Below, one piece after another: positions 4,823 to 34,683 of a DNA stretch of 64,000 bases. Position 1 is the first letter of the stretch. Each line of letters begins with the position of its first letter. The position numbers were made by a program, and so were the translations under genes. This stretch comes from Andalucia godoyi And28. Taxonomy: Eukaryota > Protista > Jakobida. Under the pieces are notes generated by a model. That model had not been told where the DNA came from. It searched no databases and worked only from the letters and a program-made list of their open reading frames with translations. The stretch lies in NCBI GenBank assembly GCA_009859145.1, contig VRVR01000018.1, forward strand, positions 253,688 through 317,687. Direction: 5' to 3'.

Positions 4823-6142
4823 ATGCAGCGTTATGACATAATTCCTGAGAGCCCCAGTTATTACCCGTCTCCGAGTTTATTAGCGGGGTCCGAGTCGGAG
4901 AGTAGACGGAATGGAGATGACTGGAGAGCGGGCAACCATCACCACCTCCACAACAGCAGCAACAACAGCAACATCAGTAGTAGTAGTAGTGGTGGCGTTG
5001 GTGGTGGTGGGGGTGCGGTGGCAGGTGACGATGAGGGGTCCCCCATGCGCAAAGTGTCCCGAGTGGCAGAGGCTGCAGCACAGCACTATGACGAGATCGC
5101 GAGGCTTCAGTTTGATCGAATGGACTCGGATATTCTCAATTTACGAAAGTTTAACAACTGGGTGAAGGCGATGTTGTTGTCGTGGCACACTGCGAGAGGA
5201 CGCCCGCTCTTGGATATCTGCTGCGGAAAGATGGGGGACCTTCCCAAGCACATTACGAACGAAATCGGGTTCTTGGTTGCTGCTGACATTTCTGGGGAAT
5301 CGGTCAAGGAAGGGATTCGACGGTTCCAAGACTCGAAAAACGCTCTCTTTGACGCAGCCTTTCTCGTGTGCAACTGCTTCCAAGATGATGTACCAAGCTT
5401 GTTGTTTTCAAAACTGGCACCGTTGAAAAACAGCTTGTGGTTTGCCACTGTGTCGTGCCAGTTTTCGCTGCATTACTCTTTTGTGAATGAAGCGACGGTT
5501 CGTGGATTTGTGCGGAACGTCTGCGAACGAATGGCAAACGGAGCACGGTTTGTCGCCACGGTTGCCGATATGAGGAAATTGTTGAAGAAGCTCGCTGAAG
5601 TTCCAAGCGACAGCCTGCGGTTCGGAAATGCGTTCTTCAACGTGGAAGTGTATGACGCAAATCTCAAAGCAAAGAGCGCAGACGACGCGGCGATCGACAA
5701 GCTTATTCGCGAACAAGTATTGACAAATCCGTTCGGTCGTGCATATGAGTTTACGCTGCGTGGCTCTGTAGAGGCCTTAACAGAGTTTTTGGTGCCCATT
5801 CCTGTTCTGCGATCGCTTTTTCAGGAACATGGTGTGCGATTGGTAGAAACGCTCAATTTCGGTGAGTTTTGGAAGAAATATCGCTCGGATCCAGAAGGAT
5901 CCGAAGCTTTCGAGAGAATGGTTCTTGGGCCATCGACAATCAGCGAAGAAGGAGTCCCGCCTTCCCTGTCCACTGAGGAATGGGAGATCGCCCATCTGTA
6001 CAGAACGCTGGTTTTCCAGAAAGACAGGAGAGACCCAACTCCAGGGTACGGCAGTCCCATCGAAATCAAGAGTGTGTCCGCGACTGCCGGCGGGAGGGGA
6101 CATCCCCAGTTTGTTTACATCACGAAAGAGGAGTCCATGTAA
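4823..6142 (+). CDS. RNMT: mRNA cap guanine-N7 methyltransferase (RNMT/Abd1)
   Basis: AAQHYD, LRKFNNWVKAMLL, LDICCGKMGDLPK, VSCQFSLHYSF and EFLV...EWEIAHLY motifs. First ATG at 4823 (the track start at 4721 is GTG). Confidence 0.93.
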   Translation: MQRYDIIPESPSYYPSPSLLAGSESESRRNGDDWRAGNHHHLHNSSNNSNISSSSSGGVGGGGGAVAGDDEGSPMRKVSRVAEAAAQHYDEIARLQFDRMDSDILNLRKFNNWVKAMLLSWHTARGRPLLDICCGKMGDLPKHITNEIGFLVAADISGESVKEGIRRFQDSKNALFDAAFLVCNCFQDDVPSLLFSKLAPLKNSLWFATVSCQFSLHYSFVNEATVRGFVRNVCERMANGARFVATVADMRKLLKKLAEVPSDSLRFGNAFFNVEVYDANLKAKSADDAAIDKLIREQVLTNPFGRAYEFTLRGSVEALTEFLVPIPVLRSLFQEHGVRLVETLNFGEFWKKYRSDPEGSEAFERMVLGPSTISEEGVPPSLSTEEWEIAHLYRTLVFQKDRRDPTPGYGSPIEIKSVSATAGGRGHPQFVYITKEESM

Positions 6143-27277: not shown

Positions 27278-28114
27278 TTACGCATGCTTTTCAGAGTGAG
27301 CGGCATCCTGGTGCGAGTCGTCGTCCTTCTTCTCCTCGAGTGCGTCGAGCTGTCTCTTTGTTTCCTCTTCCATGCGTCGGATATCGACCATTGTGAGACC
27401 GTGCCACTCGTCGATCCAAGTAAAAACCTGTTTGTGGAACTTGAGAAAGACGCCGCGCTGTGACGTGACGATGTTATGTTCGACCTTGGACTGAAGCCCC
27501 CACTGCTTGAACTCTGCAACGACGAGCTTGTATGCCGTCATGATGGGAGTCTTTTCGGTCTGTTGCTGCCACCCCTTCTCCAGTGGACCACGCCCAGTCT
27601 TTGTTGATTTGAACAAGGCAGGATCTTCCTCTGCCTTGTAGTCCTTCTTTTCTGGCAGCGGGTCCAGTGCAATGTCAATGAAGTCGACTTCTCGCATCGC
27701 AAGCATCTCGTCCGACAGCTTGTGGACATTCTCTTGCGACCCTGCGTCCTGCACATGCAGTGTCTGCACAAGAATCGAAAGCTTCTTTGCAAAGTACTCG
27801 CATGTCAGAACAGTCTTGCAGAACGGATACGCATTCCATGCGTCTTCCTGCAGCTTCAGCATCGATTTCGGTGCAATTGCCCTGATCCATCCAGGAACTC
27901 GATTCCCAATATGATAGATCTTGTGCGTATACTGCCCTTTCTCCACACTCCCATCCTCAAGTGTCTTCTCATAAGGCTCGTTCTTCAAAATCTCAACTCC
28001 GTCTCCCTTTGCAGACGTTTCTTGTCGAGACGACTTTGCAACTGAATAAAGCTGTCCAATCTGGTACTCTTCCACCGTCAGCGGCAACACAACCCGGTAC
28101 TCTTTCACTCTCAT
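27278..28114 (-). CDS. PITPN: Class I phosphatidylinositol transfer protein
   Basis: KEYRVVLPLTVEEYQIGQLYSVA, GQYTHKIYH, EDAWNAYP, DPALFKSTKTGRGPL and MTAYKLV motifs. Confidence 0.96.
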   Translation of the reverse strand: MRVKEYRVVLPLTVEEYQIGQLYSVAKSSRQETSAKGDGVEILKNEPYEKTLEDGSVEKGQYTHKIYHIGNRVPGWIRAIAPKSMLKLQEDAWNAYPFCKTVLTCEYFAKKLSILVQTLHVQDAGSQENVHKLSDEMLAMREVDFIDIALDPLPEKKDYKAEEDPALFKSTKTGRGPLEKGWQQQTEKTPIMTAYKLVVAEFKQWGLQSKVEHNIVTSQRGVFLKFHKQVFTWIDEWHGLTMVDIRRMEEETKRQLDALEEKKDDDSHQDAAHSEKHA

Positions 28115-28906: not shown

Positions 28907-30127
28907 ATGATTGATACGACGGATGCGCATGTGCAAGAAGAATCGCTTGGGGTAGACCCGTCGCTGATTCTTCCGCATCAGTCTTCTGCAGTGCCGTACT
29001 TTGCCGTCGACATTGGCGGATCGCTGATCAAAATGGTCCAGTTTGTCCCGGCGTCCACCGCTTCCACCGCCACCAACAGCGCTGCTACTACCACGGCTGG
29101 TGCCGTGTCTGGGGGCAAGTTGGTCTTTCGAAAATTCGAGACGCGAGATCTGGCTTCGTTTATCACGCATGTGCAGCGCACTCTTCTTCTGACTCCGTTG
29201 ATGGATGACGGGGGTGGGGGAGGGGAAGAAGCGAAAAAGATGATGATGACGATGACCCATGTTCGCGGGACAGGAGGCGGCTCGTTGAAACATGGGAGCA
29301 GGCTTGAGACATCGCTTGGATTGCGAGTGGAACATCGAGATGAACTGGCGTGTTTGGTCCGAGGGTCGAATTTTCTTCTTCAGCACGTTCCGCACGAGTC
29401 GTTTGTGTATGATGCAAGCAAGAGCACGTCGTCTCCAGAGCAGGCACGTGCGTTTTCGCCTGCGATTCCACCGAGTCGTGTGTTTCCTTATCTTCTCGTG
29501 AGTGTTGGGTCGGGTGTTTCGATTCTTCGTGTGGACTCGGAGGACTCGTTCACGCGAATCTCCGGGTCGTCCGTTGGTGGAGGCACCTTCTGGGGACTCT
29601 GCAGGCTGTTGACAGGTGTCGCCACGTTTGACGATGCACTTGCGCTCACGGCTCACGGAGACCATACGTCAGTGGATATGCTTGTCGGCGACATTTATGG
29701 ACGCGATTACCAGGTGGGGAAGTTGTCGGCCGATACCATTGCGTCAAGCTTTGGAAAGGCAAGCTACTTTTCCCAGGAAGAGGTTGAGGAAGTGAGGTCC
29801 GGGAAGAGAAAGGGCGCGCATGCCGATCTCGCACATGCGCTACTCGGCACCGTGTGCAACAACTTGGCCCAGATTGCGTATCTCAATGCCCAGAAGGAAA
29901 ACCTCGCCAGAATCTACTTTGGAGGATTCTTCATTCGAGACCATCCGACCACCATGGCCGCCATCTCGTGGGCCATCGGATTCTGGTCCGCGGGTGCTAT
30001 GCAGGCATACTTTTTCAGACACGAAGGATATCTCGGAGCACTCGGTGCGTTTCTCGACGACCATCCTCCTCCTCCTCCCTCTTTTTCTGCATCTGCATCT
30101 GCATCTGTTTCGAATGCATCGTTGTAA
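28907..30127 (+). CDS. PANK: Type II (eukaryotic) pantothenate kinase
   Basis: AVDIGGSLIK, DELACLVRG, PYLLVSVGSGVS, GSSVGGGTFWGL, DMLVGDIYG, IASSFGK and FFRHEGYLGALGA motifs. Confidence 0.95.
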   Translation: MIDTTDAHVQEESLGVDPSLILPHQSSAVPYFAVDIGGSLIKMVQFVPASTASTATNSAATTTAGAVSGGKLVFRKFETRDLASFITHVQRTLLLTPLMDDGGGGGEEAKKMMMTMTHVRGTGGGSLKHGSRLETSLGLRVEHRDELACLVRGSNFLLQHVPHESFVYDASKSTSSPEQARAFSPAIPPSRVFPYLLVSVGSGVSILRVDSEDSFTRISGSSVGGGTFWGLCRLLTGVATFDDALALTAHGDHTSVDMLVGDIYGRDYQVGKLSADTIASSFGKASYFSQEEVEEVRSGKRKGAHADLAHALLGTVCNNLAQIAYLNAQKENLARIYFGGFFIRDHPTTMAAISWAIGFWSAGAMQAYFFRHEGYLGALGAFLDDHPPPPPSFSASASASVSNASL

Positions 30128-30223: not shown

Positions 30224-30568
30224 TCAGGCATGCTTGTCATTGGGCTTGGCTTGGCTTGGCTTGTCGATGAGGATATCAAGGGCAATGAGGTCTTGTGCAA
30301 GAGGTGTGATGTGGTCGCTCTTGACCTGAACATGCACCGGATGACGCGCATACTCCTCCAGAGCGTCTTTGGAGTCACACAGACAACGCAGCACATGGGT
30401 GTATCCTTGGTTGCGCGCCGTCGTGAAACTCTCGCGGAACGCAATCTCCGTCGTCCCTGCAATCCGTCCATTCATCCCTTCAATCGCACTCTGCAGCTCC
30501 TGCAACTCCGCCGCTGTTACCCCGACCTTTGGCTTGAACAGCACAAGATGCTCCACCACCGTCGCCAT
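30224..30568 (-). CDS. Dabb (stress-responsive A/B barrel) protein
   Basis: VEHLVLFKPK...QGYTHVL...DSKDALEEYARHPVH motif. Likely start is ATG 30568; the upstream part of the track ORF is low-complexity UTR. Confidence 0.85.
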   Translation of the reverse strand: MATVVEHLVLFKPKVGVTAAELQELQSAIEGMNGRIAGTTEIAFRESFTTARNQGYTHVLRCLCDSKDALEEYARHPVHVQVKSDHITPLAQDLIALDILIDKPSQAKPNDKHA

Positions 30569-31006
30569 GCCTCGCCGCATCATCATTCGCTCCTGGTGCT
30601 GTTCTTTTCTTCTTTTTTTTCCTGCTCTCTCTCTCGTGCCTTTTCCCTCTTCTCCTTCTTGGCCATCCGTTTGCCCTACTTCAAAATGCGGACTCATCGC
30701 CAAAAGCCACAGTCTCATTTCAAAGTTTCCCAGCGTAAAAACAGCAACAGCATCAAGCACTGTAGTCGAAGCGTAGTCGGGAACTTTCGAAAAGTGCAAA
30801 AACGATCGTAGATGACTGCGGAGAATAATCCTGCTTTTTTAGTTAAGGAACGTCGAAAAAGTCAGCGGAAACGACCGGGAAAAAAAAACGGTTCCATATT
30901 GTTCTGCGATTGCTGCGTTTTCTTTCCTTTCTTTCGTGTTTTCGCAATCGTCAAAGACTCGGGAAAAAATTGCCCTTGGCTTAGTTCAAATCTGAGAGTT
31001 GTAGAG

Positions 31007-31574
31007 ATGCGAATTGTGAGCTTGTTTGCACTGGTTTTGTGCGCTGTTCTGGTTGTCCATGTGTGTGTTGTGAGTGCGGACGACTGCAGTGGGTGTGGCG
31101 GATGCTGTGCAGATCGATGCAATTGCGTCGCGTTTGCACGGTGCAATGTCCCGCAACTTCCTAACGGCCTCGTCACATGCGCGGATAAAAAGGCTGCGGC
31201 AAACTCTAGGTCTGGACATGCTGGCTGCGTCATGTTCCGAACCGGAGGTACGTCAACTCTTCCTCATCCTTCAAATATGCTTACAGAGCATCGTTTTCTA
31301 TGATCTGAACCCAAACGCATCACGCTTTGTGTGTCAGAAGTATTTTATGATCATGATCATGATCATTATTATTATTATAATTTGTTGTTGTTGTTGTTGC
31401 TGATAATTGTTATGTTTTGATTTTGTAGATCCGACGTATTGCCATGCGGCGGTTGTCACGGGAAACAGTGGAGGAGTGCTCTCAATCAACCAAGCAAACT
31501 GGAGCCCTTGCCAATGTTCGACTGCTCAGATCAAGGAAGACGACCCGGCTATCCTTGGCTTCTGGTGCCCGTAA
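31007..31574 (+). CDS. Secreted CHAP-domain (Cys/His amidohydrolase) protein, 128 aa; two exons 31007-31247 and 31429-31574
   Basis: Signal peptide MRIVSLFALVLCAVLVVHVCVVSA; NCVAFAR (catalytic Cys). A GTACGT...TTTGTAG intron (31248-31428) restores the frame to YCHAAVV...INQANW (His and the EAN-like motif). Confidence 0.8.
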
Positions 31575-32103
31575 CGATGTCGTGATGTCGTGATGTCGTG
31601 TTGTCATGGTGTCGTGATGTACCAACATGAATTTGATGTTCTCCGTTTTCCGTTTTCCTCTTCCGTTTTGTAGTGTTTGTTTCAGCAGTTTTCGTGATGT
31701 AAAGATGTAGGAGACACTGTTCTTTTTATTTTCTTCTCTTTTCTGAAGAGTCCTTTGGTTGCTGGCTGGTTGCGCACGTCAGCACGTGTGACTGCGGACA
31801 TGCAAGCAGCGACCTGGTCGTAATTCTCCCGTGGGCTGCCTGCCATCCGCGGTCCACTCAGGTTTGCCCAGCGCTTCCAAGCTGTTTGCTACAACGCGGA
31901 AGCTTTATCGGAGGTTTTTTGCTTTCATATTCTTGTCTTTTGGGGAAACTTCGCTTGGATGGCTGGTGCATCGCGGGGAACGAGAGCGAGAAAGAAAACA
32001 CACAAGGAGAGAAGGGAAGAAGAGAAGTGCTTTCGCAATTTTCTATTCTATTCTTTTCCTTTTCTTTTGCTCAGCAACGCCGCAGCGTACTTTGACAGAC
32101 TCG

Positions 32104-32832
32104 ATGATTAAGAGCGGTAATCCGCTTTATCGAAACCAGAGCGTCAGTTCCAGAGACATTGAGCTGTCTCCCGCTTCTGACGCTCGACATGGCATTACGG
32201 CACCGGATGGTGATGCACCGCCCACCCACCGCAAGAATCTTCCTCTTGTCCTCTTCATTGTTCTCATGATATGCGAGCTGTACACGTCGTCTGCAATCGG
32301 GTTCCTCGATGTTGTCGACAAGCAAGTCGTGTATATGGTTTACGTGTTCACGACGGTTGTTCGGTGTGCGATCTGGCTTACTTGCTCTATTTATTTGCAG
32401 CGGGACTGGAAAAAGCTTCTCGTCTTGTACTGTCCCATTGACAATCTCTTTCTCACTGCAGCTCTTGCTTCCGTAACGTATGGTTTCCTGAATGTCGGTG
32501 ACAGTCCAGACGGCTGGGTCGTTGCGGCTCTGATTGCATACCCAATCTTGCTGTTCTGCTTAAGCGGGAACTTCCGTGTCATGATGCACGACATGAAGTG
32601 GACCCCACCGCGGCTCATTGCCTACAAACTCAACCGAGCGTACGGGGTCGTTTTTTACCTTGTGATCGGATCCGTCAAGATTCGAAATCCTCCCGAGGAC
32701 TTTGATCTCGACATGTACTTACTGTTTGTGTTCACGACACTGGCGTTTTTGTCAGAACTCTACTTTTTCATTTCGCGCGTCGACGGATCTGAAAATATGA
32801 AGTACAACTACGAGTTTCAGGAAGAGGACTAG
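32104..32832 (+). CDS. Hypothetical multi-pass membrane protein (about 6 TM, 242 aa)
   Basis: ATG at 32104; alternating hydrophobic segments; no family recognised. Confidence 0.7.
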   Translation: MIKSGNPLYRNQSVSSRDIELSPASDARHGITAPDGDAPPTHRKNLPLVLFIVLMICELYTSSAIGFLDVVDKQVVYMVYVFTTVVRCAIWLTCSIYLQRDWKKLLVLYCPIDNLFLTAALASVTYGFLNVGDSPDGWVVAALIAYPILLFCLSGNFRVMMHDMKWTPPRLIAYKLNRAYGVVFYLVIGSVKIRNPPEDFDLDMYLLFVFTTLAFLSELYFFISRVDGSENMKYNYEFQEED

Positions 32833-33060: not shown

Positions 33061-34683
33061 CTACTCACCAATGGAATAGGACTCCACACCAAGAGACGAC
33101 TTTGCACTGAATGCAACCTGTCTTCCCGAATCGACGGCGATGACATCCACAACCTTCAGCGACGACAGCAAGTCCGGGGTGTCAAACGAAACCCGTACTG
33201 GGAAATACGCATCCACAGTCTTTGCACCACCTGATATGGTCAGTTCGACGGAGCCCGTAGAGCCTGCTTCGACGGCAGGCAGCATCCATTCGACAAACGA
33301 GTTTCCATTGTCGTCTCGCGTAACGCGCACTTTCGAATTGACGCCACCCGTATCTTCGGACTGCACGGCTGCGTTGACATTCCCGGCGATTGCCGGAACT
33401 GGGAAAACGACTCGCAGATGGCGGACGGAAGAGAATTTGCGAGCCTCAAACTCAACGGTCGCATCGACCCCGGCTGGCGACGGATTGACCCACACATTGA
33501 CCATGACTGGGAGCGCGTCATCGTCGAGATTGGATGCCTTTTGTCTCCACCGCAGGATCGACAGGGGAGTGTTGACTGGAAATCCACCGCTGGAAGATGC
33601 GTCCTTCATTGCAAGGACCGACGACTCTGCAAAGAGGTCCTTGTTGATCTTGGGATGCGTCTTGAACGCAAACAAGCCCGCTCTTTGAGCATTGGAAAAC
33701 GATGAGATGATCCGCACGTTGGACTTTGCAGGATCAGAAACGGTAACAAACACGTCTCCAGACAGCGAAAACCCCCTCATTCCGCCCGACTTGTCGAGGA
33801 CCACGTGTACCTTTTCTTCAGCAGAAACCACGACCCCCTCCGTCTCCTCTGAGCCGCCTGCAAAGTTTCCAGCTGCCGACGCTGCACCCGAACCAGGAAC
33901 CATCGACGCTCCGCCTGCAGAAGTAGAGCCCGCGATTCCCTCCTCTCTCGCAAGCTGATCCGCCAAATCCACCGTCTTTTTCTTTCCAAGCTGCATTCCT
34001 GTTGATCGCTTCCCTCCAGCACCTCCCGAACTTTTTGAAGATCCATATGCGCTCGAAGAAGACGACGACGACAATGCACCGGACGACGACGACGAGCTGA
34101 CTGCAAAGTGTCCAGACGTGGAGGAGCGGTCGCTTCCCATGGACCTTGGGGCGTGTCCGATAACCTTGTTGGCCTCGATTTCCTTGACTTTTTGCTTCAT
34201 TTCCTCTCTGGCACGAAGCTCCTTGCTTTCTCGGATCAGGTTGGCAAGCTTTTCCTCCTGGGAATCCATTGACAAGAACATTCTGATCTGGTCCACAGAG
34301 AACGACTCGCGGTTTCCACCCTGCACAATTACCTCGTCGAATGCAAAAAGAATCTCAAACGACGCCTTCCTGACTTCGTTCTCTGAAAACCCCTTGCACA
34401 AATCCGGCAAAAGACGTGCCAACAGCCGCAGCGTCTCCAAATCTTCCACAATGTTGGACGATTTGGTCGAAATCACAACCAGATAAAGCCCAGACTCAAG
34501 CGGCTGGTACACATACCGAACAGAGTCCGTCTCAACAAGTGTGTGCGACTTTGGCCCCGTCCCCACGAGCTTCGGAAACGCTGAGAGCAACCCTTCAATT
34601 CGAATCCGCGATGTATCCACATACTGCCGAGAAAGCAGCGGCTTTCCACTTTTGCTCAAAATCGCAGCAGAAATAACAACCAT
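33061..34683 (-). CDS. ARCN1: Coatomer subunit delta
   Basis: Longin domain (LLSRQY...RIEGLLSAFPKL...VETDSVRYVYQP, SNIVEDLETLRLL) plus mu-homology domain (FKTHPKINK, ILRWR). Confidence 0.96.
   Translation of the reverse strand: MVVISAAILSKSGKPLLSRQYVDTSRIRIEGLLSAFPKLVGTGPKSHTLVETDSVRYVYQPLESGLYLVVISTKSSNIVEDLETLRLLARLLPDLCKGFSENEVRKASFEILFAFDEVIVQGGNRESFSVDQIRMFLSMDSQEEKLANLIRESKELRAREEMKQKVKEIEANKVIGHAPRSMGSDRSSTSGHFAVSSSSSSGALSSSSSSSAYGSSKSSGGAGGKRSTGMQLGKKKTVDLADQLAREEGIAGSTSAGGASMVPGSGAASAAGNFAGGSEETEGVVVSAEEKVHVVLDKSGGMRGFSLSGDVFVTVSDPAKSNVRIISSFSNAQRAGLFAFKTHPKINKDLFAESSVLAMKDASSSGGFPVNTPLSILRWRQKASNLDDDALPVMVNVWVNPSPAGVDATVEFEARKFSSVRHLRVVFPVPAIAGNVNAAVQSEDTGGVNSKVRVTRDDNGNSFVEWMLPAVEAGSTGSVELTISGGAKTVDAYFPVRVSFDTPDLLSSLKVVDVIAVDSGRQVAFSAKSSLGVESYSIGE

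Follow-up and report, generated by a model that had tools for sequence, protein, structure and literature searches.

A 64,000-nucleotide stretch of contig VRVR01000018.1 from the jakobid Andalucia godoyi And28 (the window, which here always means the whole stretch) was analyzed around positions 31007 to 31574, where a first-pass annotation made from the sequence alone had proposed an intron-containing gene for a secreted CHAP amidase. On the + strand, an ATG at 31007 opens a frame that runs up to a GT at 31248, and excision of positions 31248 to 31428, as had been proposed, joins two exons into 387 nt encoding a 128-amino-acid product. Along its full length this product shows 100% identity with the EukProt entry ANDGO_04341.mRNA.1 ("hypothetical protein"), so that the proposed splice is that of the published gene model. 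ANDGO_04341 is already annotated, with no function assigned; it had been described as missed by the open reading frame (ORF) track, and it is missed only by this mechanical ORF list, which breaks the gene into two fragments (30812-31303 and 31407-31574). The motifs read earlier in the protein (NCVAFAR, LPNGL, DKK, NS, YCHAAVV and INQANW) are all found in the spliced product. The features of the gene are the following.

31007-31247 (+), exon 1, 241 nt: codes for the signal peptide, a cluster of N-terminal Cys and the helix of the catalytic Cys, as far as G80 plus the first nucleotide of codon D81
31007-31078 (+), predicted signal peptide, residues 1-24, MRIVSLFALVLCAVLVVHVCVVSA, from a hydropathy/sequence reading, with predicted cleavage after VSA
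31124-31126 (+), Cys40 codon TGC: predicted nucleophile, at the N-terminus of helix 40-47
31248-31428 (+), intron, 181 nt, GT..AG, spliceosomal-type, phase 1 in codon D81, GC 0.33
31429-31574 (+), exon 2, 146 nt including TAA at 31572-31574: catalytic His strand, Q-A-N motif and C-terminal beta strands, with the protein ending in GFWCP
31440-31445 (+), Cys85 and His86 codons TGC CAT: His86 is the predicted general base
31491-31499 (+), Q102-A103-N104 codons: counterpart of the CHAP E-x-N motif, with the third polar active-site residue

The splice junction is fixed to the base by four intronless homologous loci (L001, L003, L004 and L005), which in tblastx comparisons run unbroken where the window jumps from 31246 to 31428. 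The protein alignment over the junction is likewise free of gaps, CVMFRTG/DPTYCHAA in A. godoyi (the slash marking the junction) facing CVMFRTGDPQYCHAA in the closest relative, P0002. The intron starts with GTACGT and ends with TTTTGTAG; its 3' end is T-rich and closes with TAG, and it contains stops in all three frames. Its size and ends fit those of the 134 verified A. godoyi introns, which are 55 to 756 nt long and all GT..AG (PMC7050145). Within the intron, positions 31347-31399 hold perfect (ATGATC)3.3 and (TTG)6 microsatellites with ATT/TTA runs between them. As for the start site, an in-frame ATG is present upstream at 30812 (+), from which the frame has no stop for 65 codons to 31007. 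Since a hydrophobic leader stands at the very N-terminus of the published model and of every full-length homologue, ATG 31007 is the likely start and the upstream ATG is probably not used. The open upstream stretch (30812-31006, +) spans an A9 run and T-rich tracts.

Fold, active site and cysteines of the ANDGO_04341 protein

An exhaustive HMMER search over 1.84 billion representative proteins led to the recovery of 164 relatives of the 128-amino-acid protein at E<=1e-3, the best of which (P0002) is 65% identical (E 2.5e-39). Among the 150 aligned relatives covered by the Pfam scan and by the residue counts given below, 128 matched the Pfam CHAP family (PF05257) at E<=0.01, with a best E of 6e-19, and some carry GH25, SLT, SH3, SLH or other wall-associated modules. 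Relative to the PF05257 gathering score of 26 bits, the closest relatives (P0002 to P0004) reach 22-24 bits and the myxobacterial type 34 bits. When a profile of the whole family was run against solved structures, the CHAP structure 2lrj came first (2e-10), followed by PcsB, 2k3a and LysK, and both Ly7917 and the glutathionylspermidine (Gsp) amidase were also recovered. Compared profile to profile, the eukaryote type and the myxobacterial type aligned end to end over 93 columns (99.8% probability, E 2e-28). With the single sequence, a direct phmmer search against PDB sequences gave chance matches only (phage baseplate proteins, E ~0.2) and a word-indexed protein search retrieved only the protein itself; looking up contigs that encode exactly this protein yielded none. 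Taken together, these sequence comparisons indicate that the CHAP assignment is secure at the superfamily level but transitive, since the protein itself scores nothing against PF05257 and membership runs through intermediate sequences. The earlier CHAP call thus stands as regards the superfamily, by way of the relatives and with the Cys/His pair kept, and fails as regards the PF05257 HMM, which gives no match to the protein.

Cys40 is a Cys in 146 of the 150 relatives and aligns with the catalytic Cys region of the CHAP domain 2k3a, while His86 (His in 149/150) aligns with the His of the GHVAYV motif of solved CHAP domains. The Q102-A103-N104 motif aligns with the 'EaN' of these domains; Asn104 is present in 124 relatives, and position 102 is occupied by E in 115, Q in 17 (including ANDGO_04341), N in 14 and D in 3. 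An AlphaFold2 run with the 150-sequence alignment gave a model with a pLDDT of 84.6 overall and >93 over residues 41-128, the N-terminal helix being of low confidence; the single-sequence run gave a pLDDT of 41.7. In this model Cys40 occupies the N-terminal end of helix 40-47 and strand 85-94 has His86 at its beginning, an arrangement that is papain-like. The best Foldseek match in the PDB was the CHAP lysin Ly7917 (E 2e-4), with trypanothione and Gsp amidases, 2k3a, Spr and PlyGRCS also found; in a viral library, a Peptidase C51 protein came at the top (E 2e-5, TM 0.60, rmsd 2.5), followed by CHAP endolysins. The papain-like fold, for which a structure prediction had been suggested as a check, was therefore found in the model, its best matches being CHAP/Peptidase C51 lysins and amidases.

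The modelled protein has in common with CHAP hydrolases (PF05257: 2k3a of S. saprophyticus, PcsB, phage LysK and the S. suis prophage lysin Ly7917) a papain-like alpha+beta fold with a Cys at a helix N-terminus, a His on the following beta strand and E/Q-x-N on the next one. It differs from them by a Gln where Glu is usual, by an insertion of 5 residues and a Cys immediately preceding the His, by 12 extra Cys and by the absence of a PF05257 score, and its gene is an intron-containing one of a eukaryotic nucleus.

The N-terminus reads as a signal peptide by hydropathy, as had been predicted, with MR, a 20-residue hydrophobic core, and then VSA followed by DD after the predicted cleavage site. 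The eukaryotic homologues likewise start with hydrophobic leaders, and the bacterial relatives possess lipoprotein-type leaders with a visible lipobox. The ANDGO_04341 product is thus predicted to be secreted. After cleavage it would retain 13 Cys, in agreement with the many extra Cys noticed earlier, and this odd number fits six disulfides plus the free thiol of the nucleophile; the mature protein would be rich in disulfides. Cys58 (31178-31180) and Cys85 are found in 20 and 19 of the 150 relatives, respectively; they covary with a correlation of 0.91 and co-occur almost only in the eukaryote-type subfamily. Cys74, Cys110 and Cys127 also co-occur, and are already found in the bacterial sister group. 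On the whole, it is very likely that the ANDGO_04341 product has the CHAP fold, keeps its Cys/His pair intact and is secreted.

Genomic setting and relatives in protists and giant viruses

The genes lying around ANDGO_04341 are ordinary eukaryotic ones.

27278-28114 (-), phosphatidylinositol transfer protein (PITP) gene
28907-30127 (+), Fumble-type pantothenate kinase gene
within 30224-30799 (-), Dabb-domain protein gene, the Pfam Dabb match starting at residue 82 of the mechanical ORF
30587-31006 (unstranded), probable divergent intergenic/5' region between the Dabb gene (-) and the CHAP gene, the 30587 boundary being estimated
33061-34683 (-), adaptor-complex (AP) mu subunit gene

The family being overwhelmingly bacterial, the gene could be taken for a bacterial contaminant, or for a chance pair of ORFs joined by an imagined intron. 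We consider the probability of such an artefact practically negligible. The gene stands on one contig flanked by eukaryotic genes, removal of its GT..AG intron gives a gap-free alignment to the homologues, and the spliced product matches the published gene model. In addition, its coding sequence (GC 0.55) has a host-like GC at third codon positions (GC3) of 0.55, to be compared with a GC3 of 0.56-0.66 in the neighbour genes and an overall GC of 0.65-0.73 in the homologous myxobacterial loci. The intron had been put forward at the outset as an argument against contamination; together with the neighbour-like GC3 it rules contamination out, and the eukaryotic neighbours point the same way. Both versions of the artefact were rejected on these grounds. 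No paralogue of ANDGO_04341 was found in the 64-kb window, nor any synteny between the window and the homologous contigs.

A signature, GCV[ML]FRTGDPTYCHA, was found in 22 sequences recovered by the searches, in two giant-virus sequences and in the spliced product of contig L024. The eukaryotic sources of this clade are A. godoyi, Dinobryon divergens (EukProt, P0156), two contigs, L006 and L001, and the chrysophyte-like contig L024. L006 spans 589 kb and includes eIF2A and EF-hand genes as well as a (CA)n repeat, and L001 is a 6.4-kb contig with a protein kinase gene and a GH25-like gene. The latter corresponds to a weak GH25 lysozyme match (L001:4660-5034 and L002:1047-1421) on the contig that bears the closest relative, P0002; it would represent, alongside P0002, a further wall hydrolase of bacterial type in that eukaryote-like genome. 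In L024, a GT..AG phase-0 intron (4840-4955) separates Q from A in DQANW, at a site unlike that of the A. godoyi intron, and the different sites point to separate intron gains in resident cellular genes. The database proteins P0006, P0007, P0010, P0011 and P0013 are read-throughs of the L024 intron, ending in '...DQV...'. An insertion in the clade member P0166 showed no obvious GT..AG intron.

Two giant-virus-like IMG/VR contigs carry intronless members of the clade, 52-55% identical to the A. godoyi protein. The first, L025 (IMGVR_UViG_3300043427_002048), is 222 kb long with a GC of 0.29, and the gene is flanked by Erv1/Alr, NUDIX and kinase genes. The second, L026 (IMGVR GVMAG-M-3300021425-21_000001), is a contig of a giant-virus metagenome-assembled genome (MAG) with a GC of 0.27, on which the flanking genes are eIF4E-like and PCNA-like. 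Its gene (L026:2401-3801, +) encodes a secreted-looking protein of 466 amino acids where the CHAP domain has a lipocalin domain on one side and a C-type (GH22) lysozyme (PF00062, E 1e-21) on the other. Such a three-part antibacterial-looking protein is unusual for a virus of eukaryotes. In L025 (2239-3285, +), a second Cys-rich N-terminal domain of ~150 amino acids precedes the CHAP domain, and it is also present in P0156 and P0010 (from Dinobryon divergens and L024, respectively). Its pattern, YDK..SW.Q.C..GC.EC..DSTCG.TYFTTHAL...GD.VIMNNG..GDASHCC, is not recognized by Pfam, and the Cys...His arrangement suggests another papain-like amidase.

Neighbour-joining (NJ) trees were built from 155 sequences over 95 columns with 200 bootstraps. 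The eukaryote- and virus-type sequences formed one clade in 189 of the 200 replicates, with Cys-rich lipoprotein-type CHAPs as sister group. The clade is thereby nested among bacterial sequences, in keeping with the bacterial origin proposed by the first-pass annotation. A scan of GTDB genomes recovered lipoprotein-type CHAPs from Myxococcota only (Labilithrix, Byssovorax, Chondromyces, Archangium and Cystobacter), the scan having been seeded with six myxobacterial-type sequences, which biases the taxa recovered. These uncharacterised Cys-rich CHAP lipoproteins of myxobacteria are the closest bacterial relatives (36-38% identity, hhalign 99.8%) and share with ANDGO_04341 its length, the NCVxYARC and GCV motifs, the WCP C-terminus and several Cys. 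They differ by lipobox leaders, GHVAYV instead of YCHAAVV, a Glu in E-x-N, the lack of introns and a GC of 0.65-0.73. The clade may tentatively be derived from bacterial lipoproteins of the CHAP type, a lineage represented most closely, among the genomes sampled, in Myxococcota. We infer the direction and the route of the transfer, whether from bacteria, a virus or another eukaryote, and both donor and route are tentative, given the simple tree method (NJ, 95 columns) and a genome scan that started from patterns of the myxobacterial type.

The A. godoyi gene might not have come directly from a bacterium, but have been passed on by a giant virus, or by a different eukaryote, already in possession of the eukaryote-type gene. 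The presence of members 52-55% identical on L025 and L026 speaks for such a route, as does the fact that one clade brings together such very distant eukaryotes as a jakobid and a chrysophyte; the grouping at 189/200 argues against separate bacterial acquisitions. On the other side, the viral sequences cluster with the Dinobryon-like subgroup and not with A. godoyi (L025 and Dinobryon together in 136/200 bootstraps), the internal branches are weakly supported, the placement of A. godoyi within the clade included, and in the window the gene is surrounded by ordinary host genes rather than viral ones. We regard this route as a serious possibility, somewhat less likely than not. It concerns the origin of the gene only and can be held together with the function proposed below.

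Proposed function and comparison with captured wall hydrolases

Our preferred explanation is that ANDGO_04341 encodes an enzyme directed against bacterial cell walls. The two-exon gene would give a 128-amino-acid pre-protein and, after removal of the signal peptide, a single-domain cysteine amidase/peptidase of ~104 amino acids. Cys40 would attack bacterial peptidoglycan at an amide bond, either within the stem peptide or at MurNAc-L-Ala, with His86 on the neighbouring beta strand serving as base and Gln102 and/or Asn104, the counterpart of Glu-x-Asn, orienting His86. The twelve further Cys would form six disulfides and stabilise the small domain outside the cytosol. As A. godoyi feeds on bacteria and itself lacks peptidoglycan, the most likely site of action would be the food vacuole or the medium, where the enzyme would help to lyse ingested or surrounding bacteria. 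The choice of peptidoglycan as substrate follows from the best-matching characterised enzymes, the wall-related partner domains and this bacterivory without own peptidoglycan, the fusion to a C-type lysozyme in L026 being the strongest of the partner-domain evidence. That the substrate is peptidoglycan and the role prey lysis or antibacterial defence appears reasonably probable.

Several points weigh against this explanation. The 128-amino-acid protein itself has no Pfam or NCBIfam match, even at E<=10, and the profile of the eukaryote-type subfamily alone, run against the PDB, retrieved chance rows only and no CHAP structure. The usual Glu of E-x-N is Gln102 in ANDGO_04341, so that activity would depend on a Gln being catalytically competent. 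The modelled CHAP fold leaves the substrate open, as illustrated by the glutathionylspermidine and trypanothione amidases among its matches, and the bacterial donor is only tentatively assigned.

The occurrence of trypanothione synthetase-amidase and of the E. coli Gsp amidase among both fold and profile matches raises the question of an active CHAP-fold amidase with a substrate other than peptidoglycan, either a gamma-glutamyl/isopeptide-type amide or, for a protease or acyltransferase, host or prey molecules. The fold does not set the substrate, and the replacement of the active-site Glu by Gln could be read in the same way. However, those amidases are cytosolic domains of large enzymes, whereas the ANDGO_04341 product is small, bears a signal peptide and is rich in Cys. 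Cell-wall hydrolases give the best matches in both sequence and fold, and among the relatives there are fusions to lysozyme, GH25, SLT and cell-wall-binding modules. We therefore judge a different substrate unlikely.

The Glu-to-Gln change, which extends across most of the eukaryote-type clade, would also be compatible with a dead or weakened CHAP fold whose role would be confined to binding peptidoglycan or some other ligand, in the manner of a lectin-like factor for recognition or adhesion; moreover, the Cys directly before the catalytic His might constrain the latter if it is disulfide-bonded. Such a loss of activity is very unlikely in our opinion. Cys40, His86 and Asn104 are kept throughout the clade, including the viral fusion proteins, and P0166 has a Glu at position 102, which suggests that Glu and Gln are interchangeable there. 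Papain itself orients its catalytic His with an amide side chain, that of an Asn.

The first-pass annotation had compared the protein with the Dae enzymes, which derive from Tae amidases of the type VI secretion system (T6SS). The concept is alike, that of a small papain-like peptidoglycan amidase of bacterial origin which became a secreted eukaryotic protein, as in the domesticated amidase effector Dae2 of ticks (bioRxiv 10.1101/2020.04.10.036376). ANDGO_04341 displays several Dae-like traits: a bacterial-type gene in a eukaryotic genome, an intron, eukaryotic neighbours, host-like GC3 and a hydrophobic leader. It belongs to another lineage, the nearest bacterial relatives looking like lipoproteins and not like T6SS cargo. 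None of the Tae1-4 structures was found at E<=0.01 when family profiles were run against all PDB sequences; at E<=10, the sole possible Tae-related row was 4eqa, presumably a Tse1 complex, at chance level (E 1.1). By Foldseek, Tae2 (6win) ranked 37 (E 0.33). Membership of the Tae/Dae families was rejected on the basis of these profile and fold results, and the Dae comparison holds as an analogy and no further.

The NlpC/P60 proteins of Trichomonas (TvNlpC) are likewise protist-encoded, laterally acquired, bacteria-derived papain-like cell-wall hydrolases used against bacteria, and were at that time the only functionally described examples in protozoan parasites (PMC10461829). They have a Cys-His-His triad, often SH3b domains, and a parasite as host, in contrast to a CHAP domain in a free-living bacterivore. 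The ANDGO_04341 protein had no NlpC/P60 match (PF00877) in Pfam at E<=10, and a weak NLPC_P60 match was seen in one of the 150 relatives (E 8e-4); Spr and LytE were distant fold matches only (Foldseek). NlpC/P60 membership was also rejected, the protein being at best a distant fold relative.

In the literature library searched, we found no paper describing this clade or connecting CHAP domains to genes of giant viruses. What appears new is the lineage, together with its Gln and Cys-His peculiarities and its occurrence in both protists and giant viruses, while a bacteria-derived wall hydrolase in a eukaryote is of a known kind. Taken as a whole, the observations could be accommodated by an undescribed disulfide-rich CHAP amidase clade of protists and giant viruses, distinguished by a Cys58-Cys85 pair next to the catalytic His and by Gln for Glu. 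This clade would have a single origin from a myxobacteria-like lipoprotein and would have spread between distant bacterivorous protists, possibly by giant viruses, with viral fusions to lysozyme or to a second amidase-like domain; it would represent a Dae-like antibacterial/digestive effector family outside animals. We put this complete picture forward as a possibility about which we are rather doubtful.

Bacterial wall hydrolases captured by eukaryotes form a small and well-cited set, with tick Dae2, Trichomonas NlpC/P60 and GH25 lysozymes, which ANDGO_04341 extends to a free-living bacterivore of the jakobids, a deep lineage of eukaryotes. The locus also points to a compact clade that is missed by standard domain models and unites distant protists and giant viruses. 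If active, the enzyme would offer a simple handle on prey-wall breakdown by small flagellates and a very small disulfide-stabilised lytic scaffold, and would show how such genes travel between eukaryotes. Should it be inactive, some other reason would have to be sought for the conservation of the Cys/His pair.

Sequences downstream of the gene

A tandem repeat starts two bases after the stop codon.

31576-31620 (unstranded), tandem repeat, GATGTCGT x 5.6, probable 3' untranslated region (UTR)

A second short tandem repeat, (GTTTTCC) x4.7 at 31638-31669, also lies in the probable 3' UTR. Further downstream, the ORF at 31831-32832 (+) would encode a multi-pass hydrophobic protein with no Pfam match, and its mechanical GTG start is probably placed too far upstream.

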